Shown here: positions 20,166 to 51,367 of the stretch, one piece after another | Position numbering within the stretch: position 1 is the first letter of the stretch | Layout of the letters: the number at the start of each line of letters is the position of its first letter | NCBI GenBank assembly: GCA_002269645.1 | Contig: NIVC01002716.1 | Location: 1 to 64,000 of the forward strand | Direction: 5' to 3' | DNA: 64,000 nucleotides | From: Macrostomum lignano | Lineage: Eukaryota | Program-made: the position numbers and the translations under genes | The notes under the pieces: model-generated | Database searches by the model: none | What the model was told of the DNA's origin: nothing | What the model saw: the letters and a program-made list of their open reading frames with translations, nothing else

Positions 20166-20274
20166 CAAGATATCCAATTTCAAATGTAAAGGTATAAAGC
20201 GCCATGCCAATTTAAAGGAGCCACTATAAAGCTAAGGAAATTGTCGCTCTAGCTACTTATTGTCTGGTGGATGG

Positions 20275-24729: not shown

Positions 24730-25116
24730 CTAGCTGTAGGGCTGCACATAGTTGTAGGGGAACACGCCGCGCCGCCCGTCCTCAGTCTCGCCCAGCCACC
24801 AACTCTCATCCTCCTTGCCCAGTACAGTGATGACGTCATTCTGACGGAACCGCAGCTCGTCCGGATCCTGCGGATTGAAGTCGAACAGGGCCACCACCCG
24901 CTGCTGGCTGGGCAAGGCGGTGGTCTGGGGTCCGGCCGGGGCGGCCCTGTTCTGGGCAGGGCCTGAGGGCACCGCTATCGGGTCCACCATGTCGCGCAGC
25001 AGCATGTGGCTGTTAGTCTGGCTGATGGAGTTCAGCCTGTGGTATTGGATCATCTGGTTGATGCTGTCGAACTTTGTAAACCACAGGTAGTACTTGCCGG
25101 CCTCGTCTTTTAGCAC
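24730..25116 (-). CDS. GRB2: GRB2/Drk adaptor, exon 2 (end of SH2 and C-terminal SH3)
   Basis: VLKDEAGKYYLWFTKFDSINQMIQYHR...VVALFDFNPQDPDELRFRQNDVITV...WWLGE..GRRGVFPYNYV; acceptor GCGCAG. Confidence 0.95.
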   Translation of the reverse strand: MLKDEAGKYYLWFTKFDSINQMIQYHRLNSISQTNSHMLLRDMVDPIAVPSGPAQNRAAPAGPQTTALPSQQRVVALFDFNPQDPDELRFRQNDVITVLGKEDESWWLGETEDGRRGVFPYNYVQPYS

Positions 25117-25184
25117 CTGCGCACGTGGATTGTTTGCGAGGTTAGCGTTGCACTGTACATCGGCCCCGCTTCGCAGGGGTACAG

Positions 25185-25570
25185 GGACAAGCTGCGCCAA
25201 CCCCACTCCGCTGGGGTACAGGGACAAGCTGCGCCAACCCCACTCCACAGGGGTACAGGGACAAGCTGCGCCAACCCCACTCCACAGGGGTACAGGGACA
25301 AGCTGCGCCAACCCCACTCCACAGGGGTACAGGGACAAGCTGCCGCTGCGCCAACCCCACTCCGCTGGGGTACAGGGACAAGCTGCGCCAACCCCACTCC
25401 GCTGGGGTACAGGGACAAGCTGCGCCAACCCCACTCCGCTGGGGTACAGGGACAAGCTGCGCCAACCCCACTCCGCAGGTTGCAGGGACAAGCTGTGCCA
25501 ACCCCACTCCGCTGGGGTACAGGGACAAGCTGCGCTAACCCCACTCCGCTGGGGTACAGGGACAAGCTGT
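25185..25570 (+). repeat. 37-bp minisatellite filling the GRB2 intron
   Basis: Period 37 (25201 to 25238), about 10 copies. Confidence 0.95.
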
Positions 25571-25590
25571 ACCTGCACCAAACAACCAAC

Positions 25591-25938
25591 CTTGAAGTGC
25601 TGCAGCTGGTTGCCGAATTTGACGCTGATGCTGAAGTCCGGAGCCGTGGTCTCACTGGTGCGCACCAGGAACGCTCCGTCAGGCTGTATCAGGGTGCCCC
25701 GGGCGTCCCGCTTAAGCAGGAGCTCCTCAGCGTGGCTTCTAGTGCAGTTCGGCACGTACCACGAGTGGTCAGCCATGCGAACGTAGTTGCTGGGCACGAG
25801 GCCCGACTGGCCATTCAGCTCGGCCAGGTACCAGCCCGGATCAACGTCCATGCTGAGCACCTTAAGCAGCTGATTTTTGCTAAATCTCAATTCGTCACTG
25901 TTCGACGGAGTAAAGTCGTGCAGTGCAACGGCTTCCAT
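25591..25938 (-). CDS. GRB2: GRB2/Drk adaptor, exon 1 (N-terminal SH3 and most of SH2); spliced product 244 aa
   Basis: MEAVALHDF...WYLAELNGQSGLVPSNYV...HSWY...DGAFLVRTSE...FSISVKFGNQLQHFK|GT. Confidence 0.95.
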
Positions 25939-26124
25939 TGCTCGAGTATTGTTTTCAGTCTTTCTTCATGCAAGCAACATGGTTAGGATTTGTACTGCTG
26001 CAGAGAACACTAAGATCAATGGTGTAAGGCGAATTTCTGTTGCAAACTTCTAATTGCTAATGGCAACAGTTGGTTGGTAAGAACAATAGTCTAGTTAGTA
26101 ATGCAACTGCTAAGAACGGTTTGG

Positions 26125-26275
26125 TTGCTAATGTCACTGGCCTAGTTGGTATGTCACTAGCCTAGTTGCTAATGTCACTGGCCTAGTTGCTAATGTCACT
26201 GGCCTAGTTGCAATTGTCACTGGCCTAGTTGCTAATGTCACTGGCCTAGTTGCTAATGTCACTGGCCTAGTTGCT
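26125..26275 (+). repeat. 21-bp tandem repeat CTAGTTGCTAATGTCACTGGC
   Basis: Period 21 (26161 to 26182). Confidence 0.9.
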
Positions 26276-26679
26276 AATGAAAGCTGTTGGTTGCTAAGGC
26301 TTGGCCTAATTATATTCTAAGGCTGGGTTGAATTCAAGAAATGAACCAGGCTGGCAAGGGCGTCAGCGCAGAGTTGCAAACAAACAGTTATACGCAGTTT
26401 TATTTAGGCCGTTGGTGCTCCGACTCCGAAGTTAATGTAATTAAGAAGCGGCGAGTTTCACTTGGTTACTACTTGTCAGCGTAAATGCAGCAATAAAGGG
26501 AGCCCGAGCCCCCCCCCCGTCTGACACGCATTTTGAGCCTGACTCCTCAGCTGCAGATAGCAACAATAACAAACTATACTCGATGTCCATAAAGAGCGTT
26601 GCGTATCCTTAAGAACACTCGGTCACCATGCCTACACTGAGCATTGAGTGTTCTTTGTTATCTATTTGTAATCCTGCTC

Positions 26680-26840
26680 ATAAAGAGCATTAAAGGTCAA
26701 GAACCTGAACACAAAGAACATTTAAGGTCAAGAACCTGAACACAAAGAACATTTAAGGTCATGAACTCTGCCCATAAAGAACATTTAAGGTCATGAACTC
26801 TGCCCATAAAGAACATTTAAGGTCATGAACCCTGTCATAA
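26680..26840 (+). repeat. About 31-bp tandem repeat containing AAAGAACATTTAAGGTCA
   Basis: Period 31 (26701 to 26732), about 5 copies. Confidence 0.85.
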
Positions 26841-27119
26841 AGAAACTCAACTCGCCCTTCAGCTGAACGTCAAGAGGTGTGCAACGGCATCTGCTACGAG
26901 TCGCACTAGCTAAACACAACCTGCGAAATAGCGGAATTAAAATCGAACTGGAAAAATCATGCCAGTAAAACTACAGAAAAAATAACAAAATTAGAACGAA
27001 ATTTGCATAAAGAGCGGAGCTTTTCCATTGCCGCGTACGGAACTCGAAATGCAGTCCTAGGTATAACGGAATTGCGAATTGGAGAGGGCAGAGAGAAAGA
27101 CCGAGTCATTCAGGGCAGG

Positions 27120-27168
27120 CGGGCAGACTGACAGACAGACAGACTGACAGACTGACAGACAGACTGAC

Positions 27169-27215
<47 letters not shown>

Positions 27216-27225
27216 TAGACAGACT

Positions 27226-27280
<55 letters not shown>

Positions 27281-27290
27281 GCAGACAGGC
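27120..27290 (+). repeat. (GACA)n microsatellite
   Basis: Visible. Confidence 0.95.
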
Positions 27291-27345
27291 AGTTTTTCCA
27301 GACCAAAGCCGCTATTCCAGGTAACAAAATTCACAAGCCGTCTCC

Positions 27346-27844
27346 TCAGTGGAAGCCGTTGGCGGGTGCGGCAGCGGGCGCCGCGGTCACCAGCCCGTTG
27401 CCGCCGCCGCTGCCAGACGGTACAGCCGGGTCCGGGAAGTTGGCAGGCGAGTCGTCAATCTGGTCGTAGTGAATGGCGAACTCCCGGGCCTGCACAGACC
27501 AGCTGTCCGTGTCCCAGCACAGGTAGCGGCCCCGCTCGCCCTCAGCTCCGGACAGCCGCTCGTGCTTGTCGCCTGACCGCGTCACCCACAGTCTGTCGGC
27601 TTTCACCCAGCGCCAGTGCCGCTTGTGCAGCTCCTTGGCGGCGCACAGCTGCAGCCGGTCGCAGGTGCAGGCGTAGAACATCCAAAACAGCGTTTCCACG
27701 GGCAGCTGGTCCAGCGGGGGCGGCGGCAGGCGGTCCCGGACTTGAAGGCCGACCAGGTACTCCAGCGGGACGGGATGGTCCGAGTACTGCGGCTTGTGCA
27801 GGCAGCAGTCGGACAGGGGCGACGCCAGCAGGGGGTGGAGGTCG
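27346..27844 (-). CDS. CNOT2: CNOT2, last exon (NOT-box, NOT2/3/5 domain)
   Basis: DLHPLLASPL...DHPVPLEYL...RDRL...ETLFWMFY...LQLCAAKELHKRHWRW...LWVTR...ERGRYLCWD...WSVQAREF aligns with the human CNOT2 C-terminus; acceptor CTCCGCAG, phase 2. Confidence 0.92.
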
Positions 27845-27924
27845 CTGCGGAGCGGCAGAAAGGCTTCTTAATAGAGTTGGGGATGCGCGAGGTTAAAAAA
27901 ACGCAGACTGAGGGCGGCGGCGGT

Positions 27925-28850
27925 CCAGAAACTGAGGATCTGGGAGGCTGGTGGCCCAGCAACTGAGGATCTGGGAGGCTGGTGGCCCAGCAACTGAGGA
28001 TCTGGGAGGCTGGCACTGCAACTGAGGATCTGGGAGGCTGGCACTGCAACTGAGGATCTGGGAGGCTGGTGGCCCAGCAACTGAGGATCTGGGAGGCTGG
28101 TGGCCCAGCAACTGAGGATCTGGGAGGCTGGTGGCCCAGCAACTGAGGATCTGGGAGGCTGGCACTGCAACTGAGGATCTGGGAGGCTGGTGGCCCAGCA
28201 ACTGAGGATCTGGGAGGCTGGTGGCCCAGCAACTGAGGATCTGGGAGGCTGGCACTGCAACTGAGGATCTGGGAGGCTGGTGGCCCAGCAACTGAGGATC
28301 TGGGAGGCTGGTGGCCCAGCAACTGAGGATCTGGGAGGTTGGTGGCCCAGCAACTGAGGATCTGGGAGGCTGGTGGCCCAGCAACTGAGGATCTGGGAGG
28401 CTGGCTCAGCAACTGAGGATCTGGAAGGCTGGCCCAGCAACTGAGGATCTGGAAGGCTGGCCAAGCAACTGAGGATCTGGGAGGCTGGCCAAGCAACTGA
28501 GGATCTGGGAGGCTGGCCCAGCAACTGAGGATCTGGGAGGCTGGCCCAGCAACTGAGGATCTGGGAGGCTGGCTCAGCAACTGAGGATCTGGAAGGCTGG
28601 CCAAGCAACTGAGGATCTGGGAGGCTGGCCAAGCAACTGAGGATCTGAAAGGCTGGCTCAGTAACTGAGGATCTGAAAGGCTGGCTCAGTAACTGAGGAT
28701 CTGGGAGGCTGGCCAAGCAACTGAGGATCTGGGAGGCTGGCCCACCAACTGAGGATCTGGGAGGCTGGCCCAACAACTGAGGATCTGGGAGGCTGGCCCA
28801 GCAACTGACACTCTGGGAGGCTGGCCAAGCAACTGAGGATCTGGGAGGCT
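27925..28850 (+). repeat. 28/31-bp intronic minisatellite AACTGAGGATCTGGGAGGCTGG(TGG)CCCAGC
   Basis: Period 31 (27961 to 27992), with 28-bp variants. Confidence 0.95.
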
Positions 28851-29229
28851 GGCGGTCTTGCACTGATGGTTCACATGCACGACAAAGGGGCAGGTGTAAT
28901 ACTTGGATTAATAAACTACTCTTAATGCATGTTAGACGCACAGTTATTTACAACTTGCATACAAAAATACTTTCACGCAGTCAAGGCCATCCATCCGCAT
29001 CTGAAGGAAGTTCTACACAGCCCTATAGTCTAGAAGGTAAACTTAGAATAGAAATCAGACAGACATACACACCAGTAAAAAGGCCCACGAGAAAACTGCA
29101 GTGCAGCTGCAGCCTTGGGGTGGGCGGCTGGCTCGGGCGCAAGGCACTTACTTCCTCTCGCTGCTGCAGTGCGCGAACTGACATTGCTGGGGTGTACCTT
29201 CACACTGACAGTGGCATGCGCTGCGACCT

Positions 29230-30110
29230 GGCTGCAGCCCCGCCCTCCCGGTCATGCAGCCGCCATCCTCCTCGTCATGCAGCCCCAACCCTCCCGGTCA
29301 TGCAGCCCCCACCCTCCTTGTCATGCAGCCCCCACCCTCCTCGTCATGCAGCCCCTACCTTTCCGGTCATGCAGCCCATCCCTCCCGGTCATGCAACCCC
29401 CACCCTCCTGGTCATGGAAGCCACCCTCTTGGTCAGGCAGCCCCCACCCTCCTTGTCATGCAGCCCCCACCCTCCTCGTCATGCAGCCCCTACCTTTCCG
29501 GTCATGCAGCCCATCCCTCCCGGTCATGCAGCCCATCCCTCCCGTCATGCAGCCCATCCCTCCCGGTCATGCAGCCCATCCCTCCTGGTCATGCAGCCCA
29601 TCCCTCCCGGTCATGCAGCCCCACCCTCCCGGTCATGCAGCCCATCCCTCCTGGTCATGCAGCCCCGACCCTCCCGGTCATGCAGCCCCCACCCTCCCGG
29701 TCATGCAGCCCCCACCCTCCCGGTCATGCAGCCCATCCCTCCCGGTCATGCAGCCCATCCCTCCCGGTCATGCAGCCCATCCCTCCCGGTCATGCAGCCC
29801 ATCCCTCCTGGTCATGCAGCCTATCCCTCCCGGTCATGCAGCCCATCCCTCCTGGTCATGCAGCCTATCCCTCCCGGTCATGCAGCCCCCACCCTCCCGG
29901 TCATGCAGCCCCCACCCTCCCGGTCATGCAGCCCCCACCCTCCCGGTCATGCAGCCCCCACCCTCCCGGTCATGCAGCTCATCCCTCCCGGTCATGCAGC
30001 CCATCCCTCCCGGTCATGCAGCCCATCCCTCCCGGTCATGCAGCCCCCACCCTCCCGGTCATGCAGCCCATCCCTCCTGGTCATGCAGCCCATCCCTCCC
30101 GGTCATGGCA
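29230..30110 (+). repeat. 22-23-bp intronic minisatellite CAGCCCATCCCTCCCGGTCATG
   Basis: Tandem units visible. Confidence 0.95.
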
Positions 30111-30124
30111 GAGCCGCCACTCAC

Positions 30125-30660
30125 CCTTGCTGGGTCATCGGCAGGCCGACGCCATTGGGGTCCACGCCGCGCCCGATGAACCTGGTGTCCTCGCGGTTCT
30201 CCTCGCACAGCCGAATGAAGGACAGCAGGCCGAGCATGCCAAACCTGTCCCGGATGACGCGGCTGCCGCTGCCTCCGCCACCGCCGCAATCGATAGAAAA
30301 GCGCGCCAGTTCGTCCACGAGCTCCTCCCGGTCGCCGCTCAGGCCGCTTGGAGCGGCGGGCAGAGCCGGGAAATCCTCCTGCTGGATGGAGAACTCGGCA
30401 GAAGCGGCTCCCGGATTTCTGCTCACAGCGGCAACAAAGCTGGGCATGGCGGAGTGCGGCTGCTGCGGCTCCCTGCTTGACCGGCGCGAGTGTCGCCGCC
30501 TGCGTCGCTTCTCGCCCTCGCCCTCCTTGTTACTATTGGCGTGATGCTTATTGCCAGCCAGTTGGCCACTGAGCCTGTCTTCTTTTGCAAGCAACTGCGA
30601 ATTCGGCTTCAGGCTGGCAATGGAGAAGCTGTTTGCTGAGCTAGGAATTTTGACAGCGTA
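30125..30660 (-). CDS. CNOT2: CNOT2, upstream coding exon; 5' boundary and start uncertain
   Basis: EFSIQQEDFPALP (human DFSIHNEDFPALP) and DRFGMLGLLSFIR...G.D...GL; donor GG|GTGAGT at 30124, phase 2. Confidence 0.88.
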
Positions 30661-30938
30661 CTGGATTTATGTAAGGCCAGAATGCAGATAGGCTTTTATA
30701 GTGGCTGGCCACCTGGAATGGTTCTGCATTGCATTTAGTCAAATATGACTGCATGCATCCCACTGCGGGATTATAACAGCAATAAAGGTGCAGATTGTTT
30801 TCCTATTTGCAATACAAAACAAAGTTCTTCCATTCAAGCAAACTCTCATATGTATGAATAATAATGCCATAAATATTTCCATTTCAATTAAATTTTCCTT
30901 CTATATAAAACATTGAATCAAATATAAATGTACATACG

Positions 30939-32337
30939 TAGGGGCGTTCGGGGTTCGGGGTCCCGATGAATGTTCGGGATCGGGGTTCGGGGTCCCGATG
31001 AATGTTCGGGATCGGGGTTCGGGACGGGATTTTGGACCGGGATTTCGGGGTTTTCGGGGTTTCGAAAATTTTCTGAATTCCCATAGAACTACGAAAAAAT
31101 CCTTATGAATTAGAATATCGTCCTCTATGGTCTGCGGCAATTTCTTTCTGCTGATGTTGACGGCGTCGGTCGATCCATTCGGAGGCGGCTTATGGAGCAG
31201 CTGAACAAGTGCACGCTTGAGTGCAAAGACTTCAACATCTTGTTCTACAAGACCGCTGCTTTTCTAGACAATACCATCGCCGCATCGCCTCATCTAAACC
31301 TGGGTGACATGGTGGACATCCAAAACCGTCTCAAGAGTGAGGTCATCTGGAGCCTTGAGCAGGAGCTTTCTGGGCAAGATGCCGCTGCTGCTGCCAGCAG
31401 CGCAAATACAATGGCCGCTACCGAGGAGAGGCACGATTATGTCATTTCGGGTACTGAAGAGAGCTCTGGATGCAAGTTTTTGCAGTTCTGCAGATTATCT
31501 GGAAGTACCACTCACGAGTGCAATGCGACTGCGAGTGCATCGAACTCCGGCGCCAGAGGAGACGCGAGGAAGAAGGAAGCGAGGCGCAGAGCAGCTGATC
31601 AGCTTTCTCTGTACAGGAGTCTGGCGCAGCAGAATTTTCAGGTAGCAGTCAGCGAATTCTGGAAGCAGAACTCCGCTAATCTTCCAGAGCTGGCAGAGCT
31701 CGCTAAGCTTCACCTCACTGCCCCAGCATCATCTGTCCCATCAGAGTGCGCCTTCAGTTATTCTATTATCACTTGGTAGTCTGATCATTTAGATTGGATG
31801 ACATGAGAATTCAAATTATTTTAGTGTTTACTAGCGTCAACATGCATCAATGGCAATGCCACCAAAGACTAAGTAAACGAGATTAAGAAAAAGAGAGATT
31901 GATTCTTCATTGATAAGATAGCTTCCATCTCTGCAGAGAAAGAGGCACATGATGTTTCACACGTGAAACACATCAAAATTGTTGCACAATGAACACAACC
32001 ATTGAGTTTGTAAGTTCATTAGTTGTATTTGTAATCGATGGAATTGAATAATATACTGAATAAATAGTGATTCACTATTGGAAAAAGAAAACAAAAGAAA
32101 TGCAACCTGCCTTAAATTTATTTCACATTAATTTTAAGTTGAACTGAAAGTCTGAACAGACTAATAGTTGTAAGTAGCCGTCAATACCACTTTTTATTTC
32201 ATGCTATTGCTTACTTCGGGGTTATCGGGGTTTGGGGTCGGGATTAGGGTTTGGGACAGGGTTCAGGGTTCCCGATAAATGTTCGGGATCGGGGTTAACC
32301 CCAAACCCCGAAAAAAATGCCATCCCAAACACCCCTA
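30939..32337 (+). mobile_element. Internally deleted hAT transposon, 1399 bp
   Basis: TIRs TAGGGGCGTTCGGG / TAGGGGTGTTTGGG; 8-bp TSD TACATACG / TACATATG; TCGGGG subterminal repeats; transposase remnant. Confidence 0.9.
31192..31779 (+). pseudogene. hAT transposase C-terminal (dimerisation domain) remnant
   Basis: FWKQNSANLPELAELAKLHLTAPASSVPSECAFS matches the hATC motif; early stop; N-terminal domains absent. Confidence 0.85.
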
Positions 32338-33708
32338 TACATATGGCATCTTCTAGCAATTATGGTTATGCAATTAATTATTGATTATGGTTAAACCCTT
32401 GCTAAGTACAAATTTATTATTTTATCAAAGCATATATTTTAAATCTTAATATAAATAATGACATATTGTTTGGCAATATTATTTATCCTTTATAACAGGT
32501 TTTATTAATCTATTATCTTTATTAGCTAACTATATCTTATAGTATTGTATATAACATTATTTTTATACCAAGTAGTTAGTTAGCCTTTGTTAAAGTAGAA
32601 CAAAAGCCAAAGGCTTTAATTATATTAAGCTTCTATAAAGTAATCAATATTTATGAAACCCTAGCCAATATTGTCTCATTTGTCTGTATCTTTAAACTAT
32701 TGTAGTTCAAAACTCCAATTTATTTTTTACCATATTTAATAAGCTAAGAATGATAAAAGGACAAAATGAATGAGTTGTACTATGCATTTTTTATTACTTT
32801 TAGGCATGGGATATTTATACCTAAAGTGATTAGCCAAGATATAAAGATATTTTTGCTACAGTGTGTCACACTTGTTATTTGGGTTTGGAAATATTTGCTT
32901 GGCTTTTACACTTAGTAGCACTTGCCATTTGTGTGCTTAGCTAATAGCTATATTAGGTTAGGACCTATACTATCTAAGTCCTTGTCATAAGCTACAAAGT
33001 TATATACTATTGTGCAACTATAACATCCTTTTTTTCCTTTTTGCCACATTATACTACACTGCCAAAGAGACCTATCTATAAAGTATAGCATTATAGATTT
33101 ACCCAGCCATTTCTATTGGTAACACAATAATTTACATGTGTTTGTTGCCAATATGGCCAGGTCCCAGGTGATTTTCAAGATGTATATATAGGATGCTTAC
33201 TATCTAGATACTTTTTGGGGGATGTTTGTTTAGGGGATGGGGAAGTAAATATTGCTAGTTTTATTTTATGGTAACTGAAATAAATATGCTATAAATCATA
33301 CATGCCCAACCCCCTTGATTTACACTAGCCATGCAACTTAATTTTTTACTAAAAATATAACTTAGGATACCTATTAAAAAACCCTAAAGCAAAAACAATA
33401 CAACTTTGGATAAATGGAGGAGTAACTATTACTGTCTTATTAAGGCTAAATGCCTCATAAGCTAATTAGTGCTATATCTATATTCTTTGTTGGGATGGGG
33501 ATAGCGCTATATATGACCACTTCCTGATGTGTAATCAATGCGCTAAAGTTAGACGCTAAATTTGAAATTATCGATTGTAACCATTAGAGTATAAAGTTGT
33601 CTATTCTTGGTCTTGGGGCATTGTACATTAAACAACTAAAGGCAAAGCCCACCATGAATATCCAACTTGGTGATAAAGAGGCGAATGTCCATCTAAGGAT
33701 GTTCTGAC

Positions 33709-33997
33709 GGTAATAGCTAGAGTTCCGGCACCGGAACCCGTTTTCTAACAGCTAGGGATCTGGCAGTGCTGTATAGAAGCATATAAAGACTGCTAAGAAC
33801 ATATCTAAGAAGTCTGGATATTAGAAGCATCTCGTCCCGAATCTTATCATATTGTCTTAAATTTTAATCTAGAACAAAATCCCAATATCAGCCACATGTA
33901 GAAAGAAAAATATAATGTTCCATCTATATTATAATGGCACTTCCGGATCTGTAGCCATTAGAAAATGGGTTCCGGTGCCGGAACTCTAGCCATTGCC
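33709..33997. mobile_element. MITE-like element with about 65-bp imperfect TIRs
   Basis: GGTAATAGCTAGAGTTCCGGCACCGGAACCCGTTTTCTAA vs reverse complement GGCAATGGCTAGAGTTCCGGCACCGGAACCCATTTTCTAA; no clean TSD. Confidence 0.8.
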
Positions 33998-36900
33998 TGT
34001 TGGCTGTTCTGACCCCATGTGCTTGCCTTTTATTTAGGGCCATCTAACTCTGCTACTTATACTTGCATCATTTTGGCTTACTAGACTTAAAAATTTACCA
34101 TCTCTCTGATCTATATTTTGCCTGAAGATGCCAATTGTTCAACAAAACATGTTGCACAAAGATTAGGCCTTAATAAATTGTAATTTCATATTATTAAAGA
34201 AAAAATGAGAATATCTACCATGCAACTTCTAGACCTCCACAAATTGACAAATATGGCCTAGGCTAGGCCCTACCACTACCAGTCTTAATCCTAGATCTAG
34301 GCTAGCCCTAGCTAGGCCTAACCCTAAGTATTTGACTTATCTAGCATTCTGCTTAAAAGCCTAAATTACAGACATTTTTTTATATTAGGCCTGGCCAATC
34401 TTCCAATGCAATTCAAATGTCAATGTCAGAAATTCAGAATCAAATGCCAGTGAAATAGTGTCATAAAAATTGAAATGAGCTTACAATAGCTATAAGCTAT
34501 ATCCCCAGTATATTATATATGGCTTGGCCTTGCAGTTGCAGTTGCAGCTTGCAGGCTCATCATTGATTTGTAATTCGCTACTTTACATTTTACATATACT
34601 AAATTGCTAAATTAAAGATCTTCTCATACTACAATGATCCATTAGGCTAGACCTAAGAGTTAGGTGGGAGGGCAGGTACACGATTGTCTACTCATGCAGT
34701 TCGCTTGATTTAGTGAACTACGGAAATATTTTAAAGGTCATTAAAAAGTAGCAATAAAGTCTTTAATTTTGTGAAAATAAAACTTTTGAACCACAGGTAA
34801 AAAGCATAAGTTTCTAAACTAATAGTCTTTTTTTATTCGCAGTAAGCTTAATATGCGTTGTTTTAATGACTTTTAGTTACATTGCTAAAATTTAAAATGT
34901 TTTTTTCTTCGAAAGCAAATGCCGGTTCCTGAAAAATACCAAATGCCATATTTATAAATCATTCCAGTTTTGTTGTCTAAATTTTTCCATTTTTCAGGCA
35001 TCAAGCATCGCTCCTAAATCAGACACCATTGTTTCTGAATAAAACGCTACTCGTCGCCTAAGTGAAAAATTTCCTTCTTCCTGGAATAATCTGTTGCCAA
35101 AAGGCTTGGCACCCACAATGCCAGATACATAACATCAGATAGCCATGACAGATGACAAGTGACTACAATATTTTGAAACTATTATTCATATTAAGCTTAT
35201 TTTTTAATAATTTATTCTAAAGTAAATAAGAATGCTGCTGAAAATGAAATGCTCTTATTTTGTTTTTATATACATTGTATATGGCCTATTCTATAGCTTT
35301 ATTAAATTTGCAAAATCAGTTTTCTTGTCTTTTTTTCTTATATATGAGCTGAGCAAAGTCACTAAGCTATATCATTTAATAGTTTTTACAGCTATCGATA
35401 TATTAATATCATACATTATTTAATGATTTATACTGTTATTAGTATATAGATTACTAAGACCTAAGATTTTGAATATTGCCTATTTTTACCTTGAATTTAA
35501 AATTTTGAAAATTTGAACTTCACCTTGAATGTTATAGTTCCAGTAGGCCTATGAAATAGTTTTATAGCATGAGTTAATTTTGACATCTTTATTTTTAATT
35601 ATAATTTTTATATAGGCCATGGACATTGCTAATAGCATATAAAGATGATATATCTTAGGCATTGGTCATATCTGGGTTTTTTTGTGCGAATGGGTGTGAA
35701 TAGCATCCTGGTCTTAAAAATCGCACCCTGAAATTTGACTCAGGGTGCGAAAAGTGCACCCAAATTTTTGCAAGGATGTGATGCGGGTTTTACAATTTAG
35801 TGTTTTATTGTTATGGACATCTTAAGTCCATAACTTCGTATTCTTAGAATTAGCCAGTAATTTTTTGAATCTTTAATTAATGTAAAGCAATTGTCAACTA
35901 TCAATTAGATTTTGGTATTGGTAAGCACAACCTGATGAATTGAATACTGAATAGTACACTCTTGCAGTTAGGCAGCAAGCTCAAGCATTGAGTTTAAGTT
36001 GTTTAATTATTCAAATAAACTTAATAAGGCATCTAATTATAGACTTAATTCTAAATTAAACGATTTATTGATATTGCTGCATTGGCATGATTTGATGATT
36101 GGCTTATAATATTTGATTTGCTTAATATAAGGCTATACTATAAGCTATAGTATAATTATATATATAGGCCACTCCCCATTGTATTAAACAGTTAAACTTA
36201 TAACTTATGAAATGTTTATGTTTATTGAGCTAAGCTCAATATTGAGCTAGGCTGAGGGGAAAATTATAAGGAGATCAAACAATTAAGTTAAGCATTTGGA
36301 ATTTGGATCATCTTTGGATGGTTTGGATGGACAAAAACTTTGAAACACTATTAGTATTAGACCAGTTTTTGTCTGCAGCAGTGCAGCGCATCCTGGTCTT
36401 GAAAATCGTACCCTGAAATCTAGCACAAGGTGCGAAATTGCACCCAAGTTATGGATGAAAAAAAAACCCTAAGGTCATAGAAATATTACTTATAAGTGTA
36501 GTTTTAATTTGAGATTTTTAATGAATCTTTTTTATGGGTTAGGACACAGAAAAGTTGCATAGAAATGGCACATAGATAGTGCATAGATTTCCTTCTGAAA
36601 ATGTATTCTGCTCTGCAATATATTATATTATTATCTTGTCTTGATTATAGATTGGTAAAAATAGAGCTATAAAAGAGTTGAAGTAATAATTAAGCTGTTT
36701 CACTGTATTATGGCTGTAATCTCTTTGCCTATAGGAGCAGATCTAGAAAACATTTGAGGTGGCCAACCTATACAATACTAAGCCATTTTAAAAATAGTAA
36801 TGTAGCTAAAAATTATAAAATATAGTGAAGTACATAGTGACAATTTCATTTACTTGTAGTATAGACATGTATAGAATGCATGTGCACTAGGGATTATTTC

Positions 36901-37873
36901 TCTATATTAATGAATTGTCTTAAAGCTATTACTGAGTTGTACTAGGGCTATACTTCTTTCTATATTAAATGTCCTAATGTTGTTAGCTGCCACCAAGACT
37001 ATTCTATTAATAAATTATAATCCAAGTCTAACTATATATCCAAGTATTTGTCTGGTTATTTATCTAAGCATTAGTCTGAGTATATACTACTATTTAGCCA
37101 TTACAAGTATCATTCTTCTGTTATTCTAGTAGTGTTCTACTAGTAATTTGGCCTGAGCGGTATATTGGTCTACTGGTATGTGTACTTTATGTATTTCTAG
37201 TCCCAGGCATTACCAAGATCAAAGGGTCACAGCCTCTGTTTATTCTTGTATGTATCAATTTAGGATCTACTTTGTTTCTTTCTATTACTTTACCTCTTAG
37301 TAGTATATACTGTATATGCTTCGGTCTATTTCACTCTACTCTGCAAATAATTAACTTGAAATACACTTCTTGAATATTTCTTGAAAACTCACTGTTATAT
37401 GTTCACTATTAATCTTGCTTTGAGACTCAAGTCTATAAACCAAGTTGCCTCTTCTGGCTCCAAAAACTCATCTATTTATACTAGCTTTGATCATTGTTTG
37501 AAACAAAAAATAAATTAGAGAAATATTTCTGAAAATATGAATAGTAAAAAAGTTTTTCTTAGTTTTGTGCGAGTTTGAAATGCATACAGACAGATGATTT
37601 TGTACATAAAATGAGAGGGGCTTTTTACACATGTATATCATACAATTCTACCTCATGTTATACCACACCAAGCTATGGTTAAATATTGAATAAATGGGAG
37701 ATTCAAGCAAAAACCCTTTATTGTTAATTAAAATGCCAAAAAAACTTTTTGGTAGGTTTGGGCCAACAAAACCTTTTTGGGATATCATGTGTAGCACTAT
37801 GCAATGTGCATTTATGCCATTAATTCTGGCCCCAATTCTGATCACATAAACAATTAAATTAAATCATTGTTTT

Positions 37874-38446
37874 ATGTCAGACTTGGCTCATCAGGGTTCA
37901 GGCATTGTTGCCACTAGCCAATCAGGCTTGGAATCTGTGGCTGCCATTGTGCAAGAAATTCTAGCTCTACAATCGCGGCAGTGCTTGGCTCATGACCAGC
38001 TGAGTAGGGCATTTCGTCGTTATCTTAGTTCTGCTACTGACACAGGAGCTGGCGCTGACTCAGGTACTATCGTGAGCACAAGTGCCAATGGTCACAATGG
38101 GAGCCCAGCTGCCACAAACGCAGAGACAGTTTACCTGACTGCCATCCAAGAGTGCACCACCCAGTTCGGCAGCATTTCCAATGACTTCCTGGAGCTGATG
38201 CGGCGGCTCAGGCAGCTGGACAGCGACTCCGCGGTCAGTCAGCGGCCTGCTGAGCTGCTACTGCGGCACGCTGAGAAGCTGCAAGACTTGGAGGCCCAGC
38301 GACTCCGCGTCACTGTAGACTGGCAGCACGCCGCTTGCCGATGCACGGACGATTCAGATGAGCATCAGCTGCGGCTGCATCTGCGCCAGCTCGCTGATGA
38401 ACTCGACGAGGTTGTGGAAGCCGTCAAACTGGACTTTGATGACTGA
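37874..38446 (+). CDS. REX1BD: REX1-B domain protein (required for excision 1-B; C19orf60-like), 190 aa
   Basis: Pattern ILALQSRQ...FRRYL / YLTAIQECTTQFGSIS / LQDLEAQRLRVTVDWQ / C-terminal helix, recalled from the family. TTTTATGTCAG overlapping the ATG could instead be an acceptor. Confidence 0.65.
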   Translation: MSDLAHQGSGIVATSQSGLESVAAIVQEILALQSRQCLAHDQLSRAFRRYLSSATDTGAGADSGTIVSTSANGHNGSPAATNAETVYLTAIQECTTQFGSISNDFLELMRRLRQLDSDSAVSQRPAELLLRHAEKLQDLEAQRLRVTVDWQHAACRCTDDSDEHQLRLHLRQLADELDEVVEAVKLDFDD

Positions 38447-38501
38447 CGATGTCAGATGCTGATCAATTGATTGTTTATTGATAACTGTCGCTTTTAATCG
38501 T

Positions 38502-38710
38502 CAGGGGCGTCGCCATTGATTTTATGGTGGGGGAACAAAGGGGGGTGACTATTAAATGCCTACATGTACGTGTACATTATTTTTAGAATCGGTGTTTACA
38601 GCGCTCATTTTGGCGCCACAGGCACTCATTTTGGCGCCACAGGCCCTCATCCTTATTTTGGTGCTACAGGTGCGGGCCCATGACAATTGCCCGCCGATAT
38701 TTGCCTGCAG
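38502..38710 (-). mobile_element. Truncated copy of the hAT MITE family at 46023-46531
   Basis: CAGGGGCGTCGCCA terminus and reverse-oriented CTCATTTTGGCGCCACAGG repeats. Confidence 0.75.
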
Positions 38711-39437
38711 TGCAGATTTTGTCTGCATTGCCCTCCAATGTTTAGTACAGTGTATGTCTTAATAGAGATTTACCCGATCCTCATACCAACGTTTTGATCA
38801 CAGAATATACTATGCGTTTTGATAGTAACTGTATATCAAATTCATATTTTCTTGTAGGCATTCCCCGAGTTCTATATACTGTACATACATGCAGCGGTAC
38901 AGTACATAATTCATGCATATACCGTGTCGCTTTGTCCCCCAAATCTATTTATTAAGACTGCGGTACTCCGGATTGGGGGTGGCAATGCAGACAGAATCTA
39001 TAATGCGCTGCTGGAAAATTTCTGGGCAAACCTCGGCGAGCTTTTTGTACATCTGGTTGTCTGTATTTCTACATAACAATGAATTGAAGTTGGTCTGTTG
39101 AGACTTACGACAATTAATTCAAATACAAATACATTAAAATATCCATGTTGATCTTTTAAAAAAATTGCATTTCATTAGAATCATGTCAATCAGTTGCAAG
39201 CTTTGTTGATCCAGTTATGTCTACTTCATGGATTGGTAATGGTATGGTTTAGCCCGAATAGCTTTTAGAATGTACACACGCACAATGCATGTGCAAGAAT
39301 ATTTAATGTCTGGCTTAAATGTGATACAGTATGTGAAAGTACGTATTTATTAATTCGCTTCCAAATTCACAAGCATTGTAGGTCTTAAATTGCGATCTGG
39401 GTTAACTAAGAACCGCAAGACTGTGCATTCATTTGGT

Positions 39438-39453
39438 GACTCTTAAAAGGGCC
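39438..39453 (-). promoter_or_regulatory. Degenerate second histone stem-loop downstream of H2B
   Basis: AAAAC-GGCCCT-TTTA-AGAGTC-ACC. Confidence 0.65.
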
Positions 39454-39811
39454 GTTTTATTTTTACTAGTCCTCTACTAGATTAACGGAATAGTATTAAT
39501 AACAGGCCTAACCTCCTTGATTAAATGAAGACATAAATAATCGAATTGCTGCCAGAAATGGTTATTTCAATTGTAGGTTTAGTATTACATTTAAAATTTG
39601 ATGCGGCAATGCTCATGCTGTCTGTAGCTGCATTGTAGACTTAAATTGGCCCTACGTGTCGGACGGTGTGTTGCAAATTTATTTACATGTAAACATGCAG
39701 TTAAGCATATTAACCAGTTCTAGTATCAATAAATTTAAAACAGACTTCCACAAACGACGAACAGGAGCAGTTTTTAATGAAGAACGACAGCAAGCACAAT
39801 CAGTATGTGGT

Positions 39812-39827
39812 GGCCCTGAAAAGGGCC
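39812..39827 (-). promoter_or_regulatory. Histone 3' stem-loop (H2B)
   Basis: AAAC-GGCCCT-TTTC-AGGGCC-ACCAC, 80 nt after the stop. Confidence 0.95.
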
Positions 39828-39907
39828 GTTTTATCGTTCAGATTAGATTAGCCTAGGCACGGCTAGTTGATCGCCACTTTTGCCAGACGCCTTGCAAATT
39901 GCAAAGT

Positions 39908-40273
<366 letters not shown>

Positions 40274-41089
40274 TTCAACCGGATTTTCTAAAGTGATATA
40301 AACGAGATGATATGTGATCAATTTGAGTGTAACTGCTTTTACTAATTTCACGCTTTATTATATATTCTGGGTAGGTGGACTAGAAAACGAAATTTTATTA
40401 AGATCGATAATTTCAGACTTTGTATCAGCCAATGAGGGAGCTCCAAATTTCTAGCCTTGTTAATAAGAGTAATTTTCTTATCACACTACTATTAGTGGCA
40501 TGTAAAGTTTTTTTCTTTAAGGTCTTGGCGAAAAACGGCAGAAAAAAGGTTGAAGAAACAAAGAAAAAAGTAACTTGGTAAATGGTAATGAATACTTATT
40601 TCAGTGGCGGCGCAGGGGGGGGGGGCAGCTGCCCTCATGTGACCACAGGTCACTGCCTTAAGGGGGGTGACCACCCCATCATCCCCACGGTTTGAGATAT
40701 GGAGGGAGAGATCAAATGAGCAATGATGTGACTCCCGTCTGGCAAGCTGTGATCGAATTGGCTTCTATTGCTTTAGGCTCGTTCACAGGTTTTTGAATAA
40801 TAAAATTACATTAGTCTGCGGGTACACTGTACACCTAAAATATCCTTACGATCTGCCAACAGCTTCAGATTTATATCCCTGCAGCCCTAGCCTTCTCACT
40901 AGCCTGCATGCTCAAAGATGAATAAATCAAAGCAAGACAAATTAAATTTGTGATGATTTTCACCTGACTAATATTGTCCATTAGGAGCTCCCACTGTGTT
41001 GGGTTGGTTTTTAAGTTTGGTGGAAGTGGTGAGGATGAGGATAATAGCCCAGCTGCAGATATACTATACTAGTCGAGAATGGAATGATT

Positions 41090-41202
41090 GAATTATTGCA
41101 AACCGGGATCAGGATCCCGATGGTCAATTTCGGGATTTTCGAATCCCGGACAATTGTGATCCCGGAATTTCGGGATCCCGAGCGATTGATTTGCATTCCC
41201 TA
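41090..41202. mobile_element. hAT-like right end with CGGGAT subterminal repeats
   Basis: Ends ...GATTTGCATTCCCTA, reverse complement TAGGGAATGCAAATC, related to 46621. Confidence 0.55.
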
Positions 41203-41836
41203 CGCTGCACACTGCCAACAAAACCGGCCAGAGCTTGCATGGTGTCAGGGGTCCTCTTTGTACATCTAATTTGTTGGCTTTGAATGTTTCTTTTATTGCT
41301 ACAAAGATCAAGTTGCAAAGCGTATGGCATACTTTAAATGCAATTTGGCTTACGGCAGGGATGGGCAAGACTCCGGCCCACAAACCCCTCTATTCGGCCC
41401 TCAGGTCTTAAAGTCCTTTGAAACTTCACGATATCAATCCATCTCGCTTAAGGTCTCTCTAGTATTCTCTCGCCTCTCCTCTCTTTCCATTCCTTCCCTC
41501 TACCTGTACCTTTCTCCCATTCTCTGGCCCGCAGTCAAGCTAGCTAGATTCTCTATCTCACTTGCGGTATTAAAGTTATAGCGGACCCCTGGTGTACGGA
41601 CGGTGACGGTCGTCAAAAACAATAGCTACTGGGTATTTAAGCTGCATAAGGATTAATTGCATTTGAGATTTTGGTTTCCACATGTACTAATACACTGCAG
41701 TTTAAAACATCACGTACTGGTAGCCAGGTAGCGGGAAGCGGGGATACATGCGCGTCATGTAGGGTGCTTTTAGTTCGCTGTAGAATCTCTGCTAATTCAT
41801 TTTGCCGTGAAAATCGGCATACTTTAAAATTTGCGG

Positions 41837-41852
41837 TTACCTAAAAAGGGCC
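41837..41852 (-). promoter_or_regulatory. Degenerate second stem-loop downstream of H3
   Basis: AAAAC-GGCCCT-TTTT-AGGTAA; flank copied from the H3 3' UTR. Confidence 0.65.
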
Positions 41853-42398
41853 GTTTTAGCGTTCAATTCAAATTGTAAGTGCTTATCCCTATGGTCCCGT
41901 GCCGATAATTCTAATTTTATCCACTTCCACACGGATCAGTGTCAATAATTATGCTAGACTAGCATGTAATGATTAAACCGCGGATGAACTAACTGCCTAT
42001 AGTTTTCCACTTCTTTATCAGATTGACATTCGTAAAGCTTCTCAGAAATAAACGAGCATTAGGGATATATCTAGAATCATCTTAATTTTGTATTGTAATG
42101 AGCTAAAAATTTAATTTTACTAATAAATTGCTGTGCTTAATTGCATCAAGGTAACAAAGCATACATGTAGACTAGACTTAAATGCATGCATTATAGATTC
42201 ACTACAACTAGATAGAATTCGGATGCAGAATTTTAACGCCTATTTCATTGACAGATAAGTCATACACGTAATTCTAGAGTGTCAACACAAATGTGTATTA
42301 GTTTAGCAGCTTGGAAGTTAGGTCGTGCCTAATGGCTGTGCTGCTGTAGTGCAAGTTATAGTTTTGTCTTGCGATTTACGACATCATTAAAATGTGGT

Positions 42399-42414
42399 GG
42401 CCCTGAAAAGGGCC
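42399..42414 (-). promoter_or_regulatory. Histone 3' stem-loop (H3)
   Basis: Canonical GGCCCTTTTCAGGGCC-ACCAC. Confidence 0.95.
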
Positions 42415-42485
42415 GTTTTAGCGTTCAATTCAAATTATGCTAGACTAGCATCTAATGATAAGCCGCGGATGAACTTGAAGGCAGC

Positions 42486-42920
<435 letters not shown>

Positions 42921-43941
42921 TTAGGTAGGTGGCTGATGGTTGAATATTTTTAAAAGTTTATGACTTCAATTTTGCGCAGACTATGCTTTATATGTAGTCT
43001 GTACTCATTAGTATAATTTATTACAACAGTTCTGATTGGCTAAGAAAAAAGTTAAAATATTCAACGAACCTTTTCATCTTTCTTTACTAACAGTAGGCAA
43101 TGCCTAATTCAAAATTTAGTGTTTGGCCCTGCCGCCTAAGGGCCCTAGGCCACTGAGGCCAGAATCAACACTAAAAAGGCTTTTAACAACTTTTTTACAA
43201 CCAATTTACAATTTTTTAGGCCTAATTTCACATTTTAAACCATTGATTGCACAATCCACATTCCCGCCAGACTTAAACAGTTGTATTTTTGTCCAAAGGT
43301 ATCACTATCAGATATCAAAGTATAATGATCATTACGTACTCTCCAATCCAAATAATTGACCAATTCTCACTTTTAGACCACCAGAATGTGTCCATTTCAT
43401 CGAAGTTTCAAAATGCTACTTTTTATCTCGTAGTGGCCTCAGGAACTTAGGAATCGAAAAACCATTCTTCGATTGATGCGCTGTGTTCATGTTCATGGCT
43501 TGTTGGGGAAGCTATACAAAGCACACACGTACACTCGTTGAAAATGGCAATTTATAACGCATGAGTTGTAGTGTTAATGTGTTTAATGTGTAATAATGAT
43601 AACTGTATGATGCATGTGCAATGCATTGCATGTACTGTAAGGGTATATGTACACCGGTACATGTTAATTGCATACCACTTTCTAAGCAATTTAATGAATT
43701 ATGTACGAGAGTACGAGCTACATGTGCAGACGGCAACGGCAAGGTTAAGAGAAAATAAGTAATACATGTACATTGTACATGTATTAAACATTCATTATGG
43801 TTGGATAGTCCGCGGATAACCCCGGCTTTTATGCTACCGACATCCTGATTAATTATTAGTAAAAAGGTCACGCAGTTCATCGCTATTCTCGCATTTATAC
43901 TGTTATTCTGAAGTATTTTATGTATGACTTACAAAATTCTT

Positions 43942-43957
43942 TGCCCTTAAAAGGGCC
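43942..43957 (-). promoter_or_regulatory. Second stem-loop downstream of H2A
   Basis: AAAAC-GGCCCT-TTTA-AGGGCA. Confidence 0.75.
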
Positions 43958-44662
43958 GTTTTAGCATTTATTTAAGATAACGTAACCGGTCACTAACATC
44001 TAGCAAGACCCGTGCATCGGTTTATTGCAGCTTTCAAATTTAAACAATTACACGCCAGCACAATTTTTTGGATAATTAGATAAACTACACAAGCATTCAA
44101 AGCTGTTTATACAACTACTCTTGAGAGCCAGTCTATCAAGACAAGCAGAACCTGGATTAGATTTACATTGACATTTGACTGGACTGAATGGCCTAGAAAA
44201 TTTTTACCATTATCCTGACTCGTTGAACCATTAAATTAGTCCGACTAGGATCCAGAATAAATCTTGAATTTGAGTCTTACTTGGTGCTTGACTCAAAGTT
44301 TTTAACCAAGTCCAAATGCAATGCATTCTTTAAATTTCGTATATTTTTATTTTTAGTTGAACTTTTGAGATAGAGTTTAATGCGCTATACAGATGCAATG
44401 AAGATAATAAGAGTGTATTTCTGCAATGCTTTTGCGGCTGCCTAGGCCCTAACTAGCTGGCTGTCTGTCATTGTTATCATAGGTGAGTTATGAGTATGCA
44501 GAGATGCAGACTACATCGATTGCCATACCAGCGATTAAAAGGACAAGTCACAGGACTGACTTAGGCTAAGCGATACAGTATGTGAAATGTTTACAATTTT
44601 ATACAATCGTCAATCGAGATGAACACGAACAGGATGTCACGACTACATCATCTTAATGTGGT

Positions 44663-44678
44663 GGCCCTGAAAAGGGCC
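44663..44678 (-). promoter_or_regulatory. Histone 3' stem-loop (H2A)
   Basis: Canonical GGCCCTTTTCAGGGCC-ACCAC. Confidence 0.95.
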
Positions 44679-44782
44679 GTTTTAACGTTCTTAAGAGCGC
44701 AGCAATTACTTGCTGTCGCTGTCTGGCTGGGATCTAGCAAAAGATGCGCTCAGCCTTATAGCTTCCGTTATGCGTAGACTGT

Positions 44783-45202
<420 letters not shown>

Positions 45203-46022
45203 TTAAGAGTTGTATAGCAGTTTGGATACCCTCCTCTGTGAAATATATAGGCTCTTGTTCCTACAAATAATCTTAGCAACGGTTAGCAACGGGGCTGAAT
45301 TCTGATTGGTTAAGAAGTTTCTAAGTTAAGACAAAAATTAGCAAGTAAAATTTTACTTGTTACTCTACTAACAGTAACACAATAAGAACACGTTAATTTT
45401 GCAAATTTGCAAACATTCTTGAATTGGATGGATACATTGCAATTTATATTTTTTTATTCACAGAGCCGGGTAAACATGCAAAACAAAAATTGTACTTAAT
45501 CTCTCCCCGACTGTCGAGTTGCACAAAAAATTGGTTGACACGTAGCTTTTCCGAGTCGGACAATGCTGTATAAAAACATGAGATAAAATTTCTTAGCTGA
45601 CGAAATTTTTTTAGCTGACGAAAGCATTGGCATTTAGGAATCTTTAGGACCACCGAGGCCTTAAATTTGACCCGAGGGCCCAGCTGCAACGCCGTCCAAA
45701 ATCCTGAGGGCCTCGTGATTCATGCCGAGAGTTACTGTCAGCCTGTACAGGAGTCCTGCTGCTAACCTTAACTACAGAACCCGTTCATGATGCGTTGTTT
45801 GATGTCGTCTGCCCGAATTTACTTTTCAGTGTGGCGTCTTTTGTTGTCATTTTTAGAAAGCAGAGTCAAGGAATTTTTTAATTGTGATGAAATTAAGTGA
45901 TTTGCAATAGTCATCCTATGGGTTTGATGTGATTGTGCATTGCCATTTAACAGCTCTATACAAGTTAAATGTAAACAAGTATCAGCACACAGCTTTTGTT
46001 CACATAACTGCATCACTGCCAG

Positions 46023-46531: not shown

Positions 46532-46620
46532 ACTGCCAGCATGCACGAGAGTATATATAGACACTTTTACCCTTAGGCCAATGTACTTTATTAACCTTAT
46601 AGAGCAAGTGTACTTATACC

Positions 46621-46740
46621 TAGGGATTGCAAAATCCCGGTTTTTTGCGATCCCGGGATCTCGGGATTTAATCCCGGGATCGGGATCTCGGGATTAAATT
46701 CCGGGATTTAATATCGGAATCCCGGGATCAGAAAAATACA
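46621..46740. mobile_element. hAT-like left end TAGGGATTGCAAAATCCCG with CGGGAT repeats; right end not found
   Basis: Related to 41090-41202. Confidence 0.55.
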
Positions 46741-47184: not shown

Positions 47185-47590
<406 letters not shown>

Positions 47591-47623
47591 TAGCCAGCGA
47601 GTAGAAAGCTTTCAGTTAAAAAC

Positions 47624-51339: not shown

Positions 51340-51367
51340 CTGCAGGATAAAGTGGGGAGCTGGTATA

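Follow-up and report, generated by a model that had tools for sequence, protein, structure and literature searches.

Mosaic DNA methylation has been inferred in several invertebrates, among them Ciona, honeybee, Nematostella and oyster, from a bimodal distribution of the observed/expected ratio (o/e) of CpG. In vertebrates, bulk DNA has a CpG o/e of about 0.2-0.25, the hypermutability of CpG in mammals is about 5-10-fold, and an excess of transitions specific to CpG is the classic outcome of the deamination of 5-methylcytosine (5mC). Repeat-induced point mutation (RIP) of fungi, for which a (CpA+TpG)/(ApC+GpT) index below about 1.03 is the conventional cut-off in the fungal literature, is to our knowledge not known in animals. 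In the flatworm Macrostomum lignano, we analyzed a window of 64,000 nucleotides (bases 1-64000 of contig NIVC01002716.1, assembly GCA_002269645.1, Mlig_3_7), in which the genes CNOT2 (minus strand) and REX1BD (plus strand) are arranged head to head with their start codons 7.4 kb apart, and found that the spacer between them holds long CpG-free stretches and that its remaining CpGs differ by transition between copies of the locus far more often than its other C/G sites. The mosaic methylation of invertebrates has been summarized elsewhere (PMC11292947, PMC9246332). M. lignano is reported to keep both DNMT1 and DNMT3, unlike planarians and parasitic flatworms, and to have low-level 5mC, with Wasik et al. 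2015 as the primary source (PMC11292947, PMC9246332, PMC10658182); the genomic pattern of this 5mC has been described as unknown (PMC9246332).

A first-pass annotation of the window, made by eye, had reported no CpG in 32311-33504, 33981-34575 and 36435-37157. This is exact: none occurs in these three stretches (voids 1, 2 and 3; Table 1), where 25.8, 19.8 and 15.5 CpGs, respectively, are expected from base composition (C × G/n). None of 2000 mononucleotide shuffles reached zero CpG for any void (minima 13, 10 and 7), and at the density of the histone-cluster spacers, whose overall CpG o/e is 0.76, the probability of finding zero CpG is 3e-9, 3e-7 and 8e-6 for voids 1, 2 and 3, respectively. 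The whole region 32311-37870 contains 39 CpGs (o/e 0.28) at a GC content of 0.316 and a GpC o/e of 1.6; since GpC is in excess in the voids as well (o/e 1.5-2.0), the deficit is specific to CpG. As the annotation had also stated, other AT-rich spacers keep their CpGs (17 at 39.1-39.8 kb, o/e 0.82; 37 at 43.1-44.6 kb, o/e 0.73), and the exons are CpG-rich (o/e 0.94-0.99 in CNOT2, 0.93 in H3 and 0.66 in REX1BD). The CpG o/e of the depleted DNA (0-0.28) is thus not equal to that of these other AT-rich spacers (0.73-0.82), and TpA is only mildly higher, with an o/e of 1.0-1.18 in the void region vs 0.87 in the controls. The same annotation had described the domains as rich in TA and CTAG, as expected if CG had decayed all the way to TA, and for this the support is weak. 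CTAG is indeed 2-fold above mononucleotide expectation; however, TpA is barely raised, CG<->TA doublets between the copies number only two (see below), and CTAG has an o/e of 1.0 once its trinucleotides are allowed for, most of its excess coming from one low-complexity patch at about 34240-34330. This patch, rich in CTAG, GGCC and CCCTA (e.g. cctaaccctaag), looks like a decayed interstitial repeat of the telomere type.

Duplicated blocks make up 180 Mb of Mlig_3_7, owing to extra chromosomes in the worms that were sequenced (PMC5730564). We compared the window with two more copies of this locus, L001 (NIVC01000099.1) and L002 (NIVC01001813.1), which across the spacer are 95-97% identical to it and contain matching CpG-free stretches (L001 5062-6095 and 6482-7072; L002 2071-3376 and 3556-4154); void 1 is conserved and CpG-free in both (the first stretch given for each). 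The copies have a mosaic ancestry, L001 and L002 being 99-100% identical from about 34.0 kb on and 96.7% identical in 32.3-33.7 kb, while the window is >99% identical to L001 in 27.3-32.3 kb and then 97% identical (block A), a pattern that points to recombination or gene conversion among the duplicated chromosomes. Because of this mosaic ancestry, we used only comparisons of CpG with non-CpG sites within a region.

Alignment of the copies also bears on what lies between the voids, where the first-pass annotation, right about the CpG-free domains themselves, had missed that most CpG-bearing patches inside the region are young transposon insertions, flanked by target-site duplications (TSDs) and absent from other copies. 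The hAT-like element next to void 1 is present in the window and in L001, whereas L002 has the empty site; it carries an open reading frame (ORF) with a hAT dimerization domain (31192-31779, plus strand) and has termini (30935-31019 and 32212-32296) made of GGGTT/TTAGGG-like degenerate repeats. A miniature inverted-repeat transposable element (MITE) has its empty site in both L001 and L002, and an 804-bp insertion with subterminal direct repeats (35703-35766 and 36388-36450) and the ends GGGTTTTTTT and AAAAAAAAACCC is likewise found in neither of them. L001 and L002 bear insertions of their own (8628-8996 and 5009-7895, respectively). The MITE and the 804-bp element account for 17 of the 39 CpGs in 32311-37870, so that the ancestral DNA, 4.44 kb in length, has 22 CpGs of its own (o/e about 0.2); the CpG o/e of the young insertions is 0.41-0.87. 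Beyond the hAT-like transposon (31.8-37.87 kb), no Rfam family was found in the spacer, and all its ORFs are shorter than 70 aa.

The copies allow a direct comparison of substitution at CpG and other sites, in which each C/G site in one copy was scored for a transition in the other copy. In the spacer, transition differences occur at 16 of 78 CpG sites (0.205) vs 99 of 2546 non-CpG C/G sites (0.039), a 5.3-fold excess (Fisher p = 1.2e-7). Comparison with L002 gave the same result (15/78 vs 93/2538), and a strict filter requiring gap-free 8-bp flanks with no more than 2 mismatches left a ratio of 4.9 (p = 2e-5). In contrast, REX1BD and the histone cluster together have transitions at 11 of 820 CpG and 43 of 3652 non-CpG sites (ratio 1.14, p = 0.72; range 1.14-1.25, not significant), the histone cluster alone has a ratio of 0.9-1.1, and three other H3-containing loci (L004, L005 and L008) have ratios of 0.3-0.6. 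CpG hypermutability is thus confined to the depleted spacer, the five control comparisons giving 0.3-1.25; for exons the comparison covers REX1BD and the histone cluster, the CNOT2 exons having too few substitutions. Furthermore, transitions that create a CpG (TG/CA to CG) occur in the spacer at 0.018 vs 0.020 at other A/T sites, that is, at the ordinary rate, and therefore it is the loss of CpG that is accelerated rather than its gain that is suppressed.

Doublet differences between the copies are consistent with this. We found four CA<->TG doublets in the spacer (34155, 36773, 37428 and 37492) where about 0.4 are expected, and one downstream, as well as two CG<->TA doublets in the spacer and none downstream. 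At 34155, inside void 2, the window has CA and the other copies TG. Such doublets probably mark ancestral CpGs that were lost on opposite strands in two lineages, several of them inside present voids, and the ratio of doublets to conserved CpGs would correspond to some 0.35-0.44 of the CpGs being lost in each lineage, roughly a 10-fold hypermutability. The other copies still hold a CpG at 36911 (TG in the window) and at 37023 (CA in the window), both inside void 3; hence the voids are a state of turnover and not of absolute exclusion. In the shared patch at 34576-35055 about half of the CpG positions differ between copies, which indicates that this patch is decaying, and in 37158-37973 all three positions differ.

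Whether such a rate suffices for kilobase voids can be calculated from block A, where the three copies are equidistant so that changes can be polarized. The polarized changes comprise 31 C>T, 16 T>C and 13 transversions (transitions to transversions 47:13), and C>T exceeds T>C per site by 4.3:1. With the equilibrium f(CG) = v(fTG+fCA)/(2ku), the CpG o/e would settle at about 0.56/k. A k of 1 would fit the unaffected AT-rich DNA (o/e 0.58-0.76) and a k of about 5-10 the voids; the latter would leave about 1-2.5 CpG per kb (1.3-2.5 for k = 5-10), a density at which CpG-free gaps of 0.6-1.2 kb would be unremarkable. Thus, given 5-10-fold CpG hypermutability and an AT-biased spectrum, kilobase voids would be the equilibrium state, which the oldest spacer DNA would already have reached and which the shared patches and young insertions would still be approaching.

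Across the 64 kb, the sole non-tandem 500-bp intervals depleted of CpG lie in 32.3-37.9 kb and in 59.9-61.5 kb. The latter domain is directly upstream of the first-exon ORF of a large TPR-repeat gene (Table 1) and has no recognizable transposon. At about 61.5 kb the CpG o/e jumps abruptly from 0.18 to 0.94, the DNA beyond (61501-64000) being still AT-rich (GC content 0.37), and no ORF, inverted repeat or tandem repeat was found at this boundary to explain the switch. A similar stretch in L008 (1263-2758; GC content 0.29; no CpG vs 30 expected) reaches the annotated gene start at L008 2711. On the other hand, the 5' flank of the GRB2-like gene (25939-27345) has a CpG o/e of 0.58 and is not void, nor are the flanks of any of the histone genes. 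The longest CpG-free gaps elsewhere in the window (e.g. 53298-55946, 2648 bp) are minisatellites with a CpG-less repeat unit and are trivial, and the voids of L004 and L005 (13.4-14.9 kb) and L008 5958-6737 were dropped as analogues because they are CpG-less satellites. We also ruled out that the voids belong to a single CpG-free repeat family, as they resemble neither each other nor the satellites.

Table 1. Features of the 64,000-nucleotide window
Feature	Position	Strand	Description
Void 1	32310-33504		CpG-free gap 32309->33505, 1196 bp; GC 0.294; unique AT-rich DNA
Void 2	33980-34575		CpG-free gap 33979->34576, 597 bp
Void 2, ancestral part	34002-34575		0 CpG; holds the CTAG/CCCTA-rich low-complexity patch
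Void 3	36434-37157		CpG-free gap 36433->37158, 725 bp
Void 3, ancestral part	36475-37157		0 CpG in the window
CpG-poor stretch	37158-37973		3 CpG in 816 bp; enters first 100 bp of REX1BD ORF
CpG-bearing patch common to three copies	33505-33708		5 CpG and 1 made at the MITE junction
CpG-bearing patch shared among copies	34576-35055		12 CpG in the window; probably an older insertion
Second AT-rich unique CpG-poor domain	59894-61500		GC 0.285; 6 CpG vs 32.6 expected, o/e 0.18
hAT-like non-autonomous transposon insertion	30938-32337		1.4 kb; 64 CpG, o/e 0.87
MITE	33709-34001		293 bp; 61-bp terminal inverted repeats 33709-33769 and 33937-33997; 8-bp TSD GTTCTGAC; 8 CpG, o/e 0.70
Transposon-like insertion	35671-36474		804 bp; TSD GGTCATA; 9 CpG, o/e 0.41
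CNOT2, 5' part	27346-30594	-	Exon ORFs 27346-27699 and 30121-30594; annotated coding sequence starts at ~30447
REX1BD	37874-38446	+	One ORF, 190 aa; Pfam REX1-B (DNA_repr_REX1B), E = 1e-7
Histone cluster and AT-rich spacers	38501-47600	mixed	Internal control
Histone H2B	39908-40156	-	
Histone H3	42486-42896	-	
Histone H2A	44783-45163	-	
Histone H2B	47315-47593	+	
GRB2-like SH3-SH2-SH3 gene	24730-25938	-	402-aa ORF
Large TPR-repeat gene	50304-59705	-	Assembly products 1072 aa (L006) and 1271 aa (L009); first-exon ORF 59217-59705

We consider the best reading of these results, and a probable one, to be a locally methylated germline compartment whose spacer CpGs have been lost through deamination of 5mC. 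The spacer is old, unique AT-rich DNA broken by nested transposon insertions, and its CpGs, unlike those of the neighboring genes and the histone cluster, undergo transitions at about 5-10 times the rate of its other cytosines; new CpGs arise in it at the ordinary rate. The CpG-bearing patches would be more recent arrivals by transposition whose decay is incomplete. Germline 5mC, deposited by DNMT1/DNMT3 and then deaminated to T, would be the most likely cause of the hypermutability. Judged from the copies, such CpG decay is well supported at the CNOT2-REX1BD locus; that 5mC causes the hypermutability we infer, and likewise what directs 5mC to the domain, for which an untranscribed old spacer, a transcribed outron and spreading from transposons would each be compatible with the results. 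The process behaves like that in the methylated compartment of mosaic invertebrate genomes or in vertebrate bulk DNA, and it is the location, next to gene starts in an AT-rich spacer, that differs from the canonical invertebrate gene-body pattern.

Several observations weigh against this reading. The hypermutability test comes from one locus and 16 CpG transition events, and since L001 and L002 hardly differ along most of the spacer, it amounts effectively to two lineages except in block A. The voids show no compensating excess of TpG and CpA, with a CA/TG o/e of 1.15 against 1.16 for the controls; this could be expected if TpG and CpA decay onward under the AT-biased spectrum, and it is not decisive. 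Moreover, the ancestral CpGs are not spread evenly but cluster at 33505-33708 and 34576-35055, the patches that the copies share (top-three-gap P = 4e-4), which means that sequence age or local protection also matters. Published levels of 5mC in M. lignano are described only as 'low'; however, a compartment left with few CpGs by its own decay would add little to bulk 5mC, so that a low level is no contradiction. Finally, methylation of the domain would place two expressed housekeeping genes under promoters made of methylated DNA, an unusual arrangement among invertebrates.

A wider form of the methylation reading, an 'inverted mosaic' methylome in which 5mC would reside mostly in AT-rich upstream and intergenic DNA rather than in gene bodies and would erase its own CpG targets, perhaps with a CWG component, is more speculative, and we regard it as unlikely; the self-erased targets would also explain the low bulk 5mC. 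As to the CWG component, the first-order Markov o/e of CAG/CTG is 0.74 in the voids vs 1.12 in the histone spacers, and that of TAG/CTA 1.23 vs 1.04 (void domains 32310-33504, 33980-34575, 36434-37873 and 59894-61500), a shortage and a surplus that hint at extra C>T decay in the CWG context. C>T changes that turn CCAG into CTAG are seen between the copies. Nevertheless, across the spacer transitions occur at 14 of 282 CWG sites vs 84 of 2234 others (p = 0.33), p values of 0.001-0.006 appearing only in post hoc comparisons of block A. In L001, five C>T changes fall within 55 bp (CCCAGCC to CCTAGCT, GGCCAGG to GGCTAGG) and are followed by four A>G in 31 bp (33104-33242), and in the window three G>A lie within 7 bp (33673-33679). 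Gene conversion from a copy outside our sample, or else a hypermutation burst, could account for such local clusters of one type of transition.

One of the other explanations is that no special process has acted, the DNA being CpG-poor by origin, for example as a derivative of a CpG-less satellite or element, or through general AT-biased mutation, and the hypermutability being sampling noise or an alignment artefact. The many CpG-less minisatellites in the genome, which give even longer CpG-free gaps, and the small number of CpG events would agree with it, but the voids are unique and non-tandem, AT-biased mutation alone would lead to an o/e of about 0.56 and predict about 35 CpGs where none is seen, and noise or misalignment would have to account for an excess that survives the strict filter, is missing from all five control comparisons and is accompanied by ten times as many CA<->TG doublets as expected; we therefore regard it as rather unlikely. 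The first-pass annotation had left open whether germline methylation or a RIP-like deamination was at work, and of the two it is the former that agrees with decay specific to CpG and confined to the domain (5.3-fold, with controls near 1). C-to-T hypermutation of duplicated DNA by RIP or a deaminase, separate from maintenance CpG methylation, would suit a locus that exists in three copies of 95-97% identity differing mostly by transitions, with C>T outnumbering T>C two to one, with local same-strand clusters of transitions in L001 and the window, and with a TpA/ApT of 0.94-1.17 in the voids. However, the polarized C>T changes show no CpA preference (CpA 13/157 sites, CpT 14/154, CpC 4/102, CpG 0), the (CpA+TpG)/(ApC+GpT) index is 1.20, 2.02 and 1.11 in the voids and thus above the RIP cut-off, and strand-coordinated or kataegis-like clustering is not significant across the spacer (runs test z = -0.9), with one local cluster at 33.10-33.24 kb. 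In addition, the equally duplicated histone cluster and hAT element are without such decay, and the accelerated class is CpG specifically, which makes this explanation highly improbable.

Two further explanations share methylation with the reading that we favor and differ in what would direct it. Methylation, or some other CpG-mutagenic chromatin, might be aimed at the transposons of the spacer, for instance by PIWI-interacting RNAs, and spread from there into the flanking unique DNA. At least three insertions are present in the spacer of the window and more in L001 and L002, and the shared copies of the hAT-like element have transitions at 3 of 250 CpG vs 1 of 1029 non-CpG sites, although these numbers are tiny. 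Yet the young insertions are still at a CpG o/e of 0.4-0.9, void 1 comprises 1.2 kb of DNA that is free of insertions in all three copies, and the void at 59.9-61.5 kb lacks a recognizable transposon, so that we hold this to be improbable. The first-pass annotation, for its part, had placed the methylation in the 5' part of housekeeping genes that is transcribed but non-coding (long 5' introns or outrons), with exons spared. In agreement with this, the depletion adjoins the REX1BD start codon and runs 100 bp into the ORF, similar domains are found upstream of the TPR first-exon ORF and at the L008 gene start, the exons are CpG-replete, and trans-splicing affects 38.8% of the genes in M. lignano (PMC5730564). 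Against this, neither the 5' flank of the GRB2-like gene nor the flanks of any histone gene are void; with at least three transposon insertions in the spacer, inert intergenic DNA fits equally well; and the sample is three or four genes. Targeting of 5' transcribed DNA as such is therefore unlikely in our view.

Compared with the described systems, the locus combines features of several. As in mosaic invertebrate genomes, inferred methylated and unmethylated compartments adjoin each other, CpG is depleted while GpC is normal or above, transitions are CpG-specific, and DNMT1 and DNMT3 are present according to the literature on M. lignano. However, the depleted part of those genomes consists of the bodies of housekeeping genes, whereas here it is AT-rich intergenic and upstream DNA; CNOT2, REX1BD and histone exons have ample CpG, and neither REX1BD nor the histone cluster is hypermutable. 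The canonical pattern of gene-body methylation is thus not what we found, with an exon o/e of 0.66-0.99, depletion that lies in intergenic DNA and, for REX1BD together with the histone cluster, a CpG ratio near 1. CpG-poor non-coding DNA around CpG-rich gene starts and exons is reminiscent of vertebrates, in which methylated, CpG-poor bulk DNA surrounds unmethylated CpG-rich islands at genes, and the hypermutability of about 5-10-fold is close to the mammalian values. Vertebrate bulk depletion, unlike that described here, is genome-wide: AT-rich spacers 1-10 kb away have an o/e of 0.7-0.9 and are not hypermutable. The depletion in the spacer (o/e 0-0.2) is also deeper than that of vertebrate bulk DNA, because the background mutation spectrum leans strongly towards AT. 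Fungal RIP and AT-isochores, as in Neurospora and Leptosphaeria, are similar in having AT-rich, gene-poor, transition-dominated blocks beside GC-rich genes, in duplicated DNA and with a high TpA/ApT. They differ in that the spacer shows no preference for CpA to TpA, no fall of the index and no overall strand clustering, and that other duplicated segments are unaffected. The CpG mutation rate also depends on local GC content, decay being fastest in AT-rich DNA (Fryxell and Moon 2005, as cited in PMC5327563). This could sharpen the contrast between the voids (29% GC) and the histone spacers (39% GC); however, the effect only modulates the decay of methylated CpGs and would leave the ratio of about 1 in the control spacers unexplained unless these are unmethylated.

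The genes around the spacer were identified as follows. Pfam matches confirm the divergent pair named by the first-pass annotation: NOT2_3_5_C (27346-27699, minus strand, E = 1e-21) for CNOT2, which also corresponds to a gene call in the assembly (L003 1-2571, minus strand), and the REX1-B domain on the plus strand for REX1BD. A look-up by exact product gave no match for the REX1BD ORF; in a homology search it has homologues from M. lignano with 78-100% identity. An 80-bp segment of the REX1BD ORF (38037-38116) is tandemly duplicated in L001 and L002 (10230-10309 and ~10302), with which the longer annotated proteins of other copies (236 and 212 aa vs 190 aa) are consistent. The H3 protein encoded in the histone cluster is identical to that of a 918-bp metagenome contig (L010; JGI 3300031474). 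The ORF of the GRB2-like gene remains open across a minisatellite with a 37-bp unit (25164-25569), perhaps an intron staying in frame by chance. For the TPR gene, a homology search with the C-terminal (last) exon gave no match, not even its own protein. The window is very rich in minisatellites, with 85 rows in the Tandem Repeats Finder output, including a 23-mer in 192 copies and a 24-mer in 108 copies. Examples are the tracts at 15750-20170, 53299-55902, 27925-28853 and 29233-30107; many lie within the introns of CNOT2, which are packed with them, and of the TPR gene. The 23-mer array has gathered 83 CpGs through variants, but since minisatellite variants spread by copying, they are uninformative on any avoidance of CpG-creating variants. 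The sole tRNA call by ARAGORN in the window, a tRNA-Pro (CGG) at 30928-31007, lies inside a terminal repeat of the hAT-like element and is probably spurious.

If the voids are the footprint of germline CpG decay, they predict 5mC in sharply bounded AT-rich spacers by gene starts and none in gene bodies, histone clusters and young transposons. This would be a departure from the gene-body pattern that is thought to be ancestral for bilaterians. It may also matter for work with this animal, in which regions of up to 2 kb upstream of transcription start sites serve as transgene promoters (PMC5730564), since such promoter regions may fall in CpG-void domains of this kind. As parasitic flatworms and planarians are without DNMT1 and DNMT3 and Macrostomum keeps both, the place of 5mC in the genome of this flatworm is of interest.

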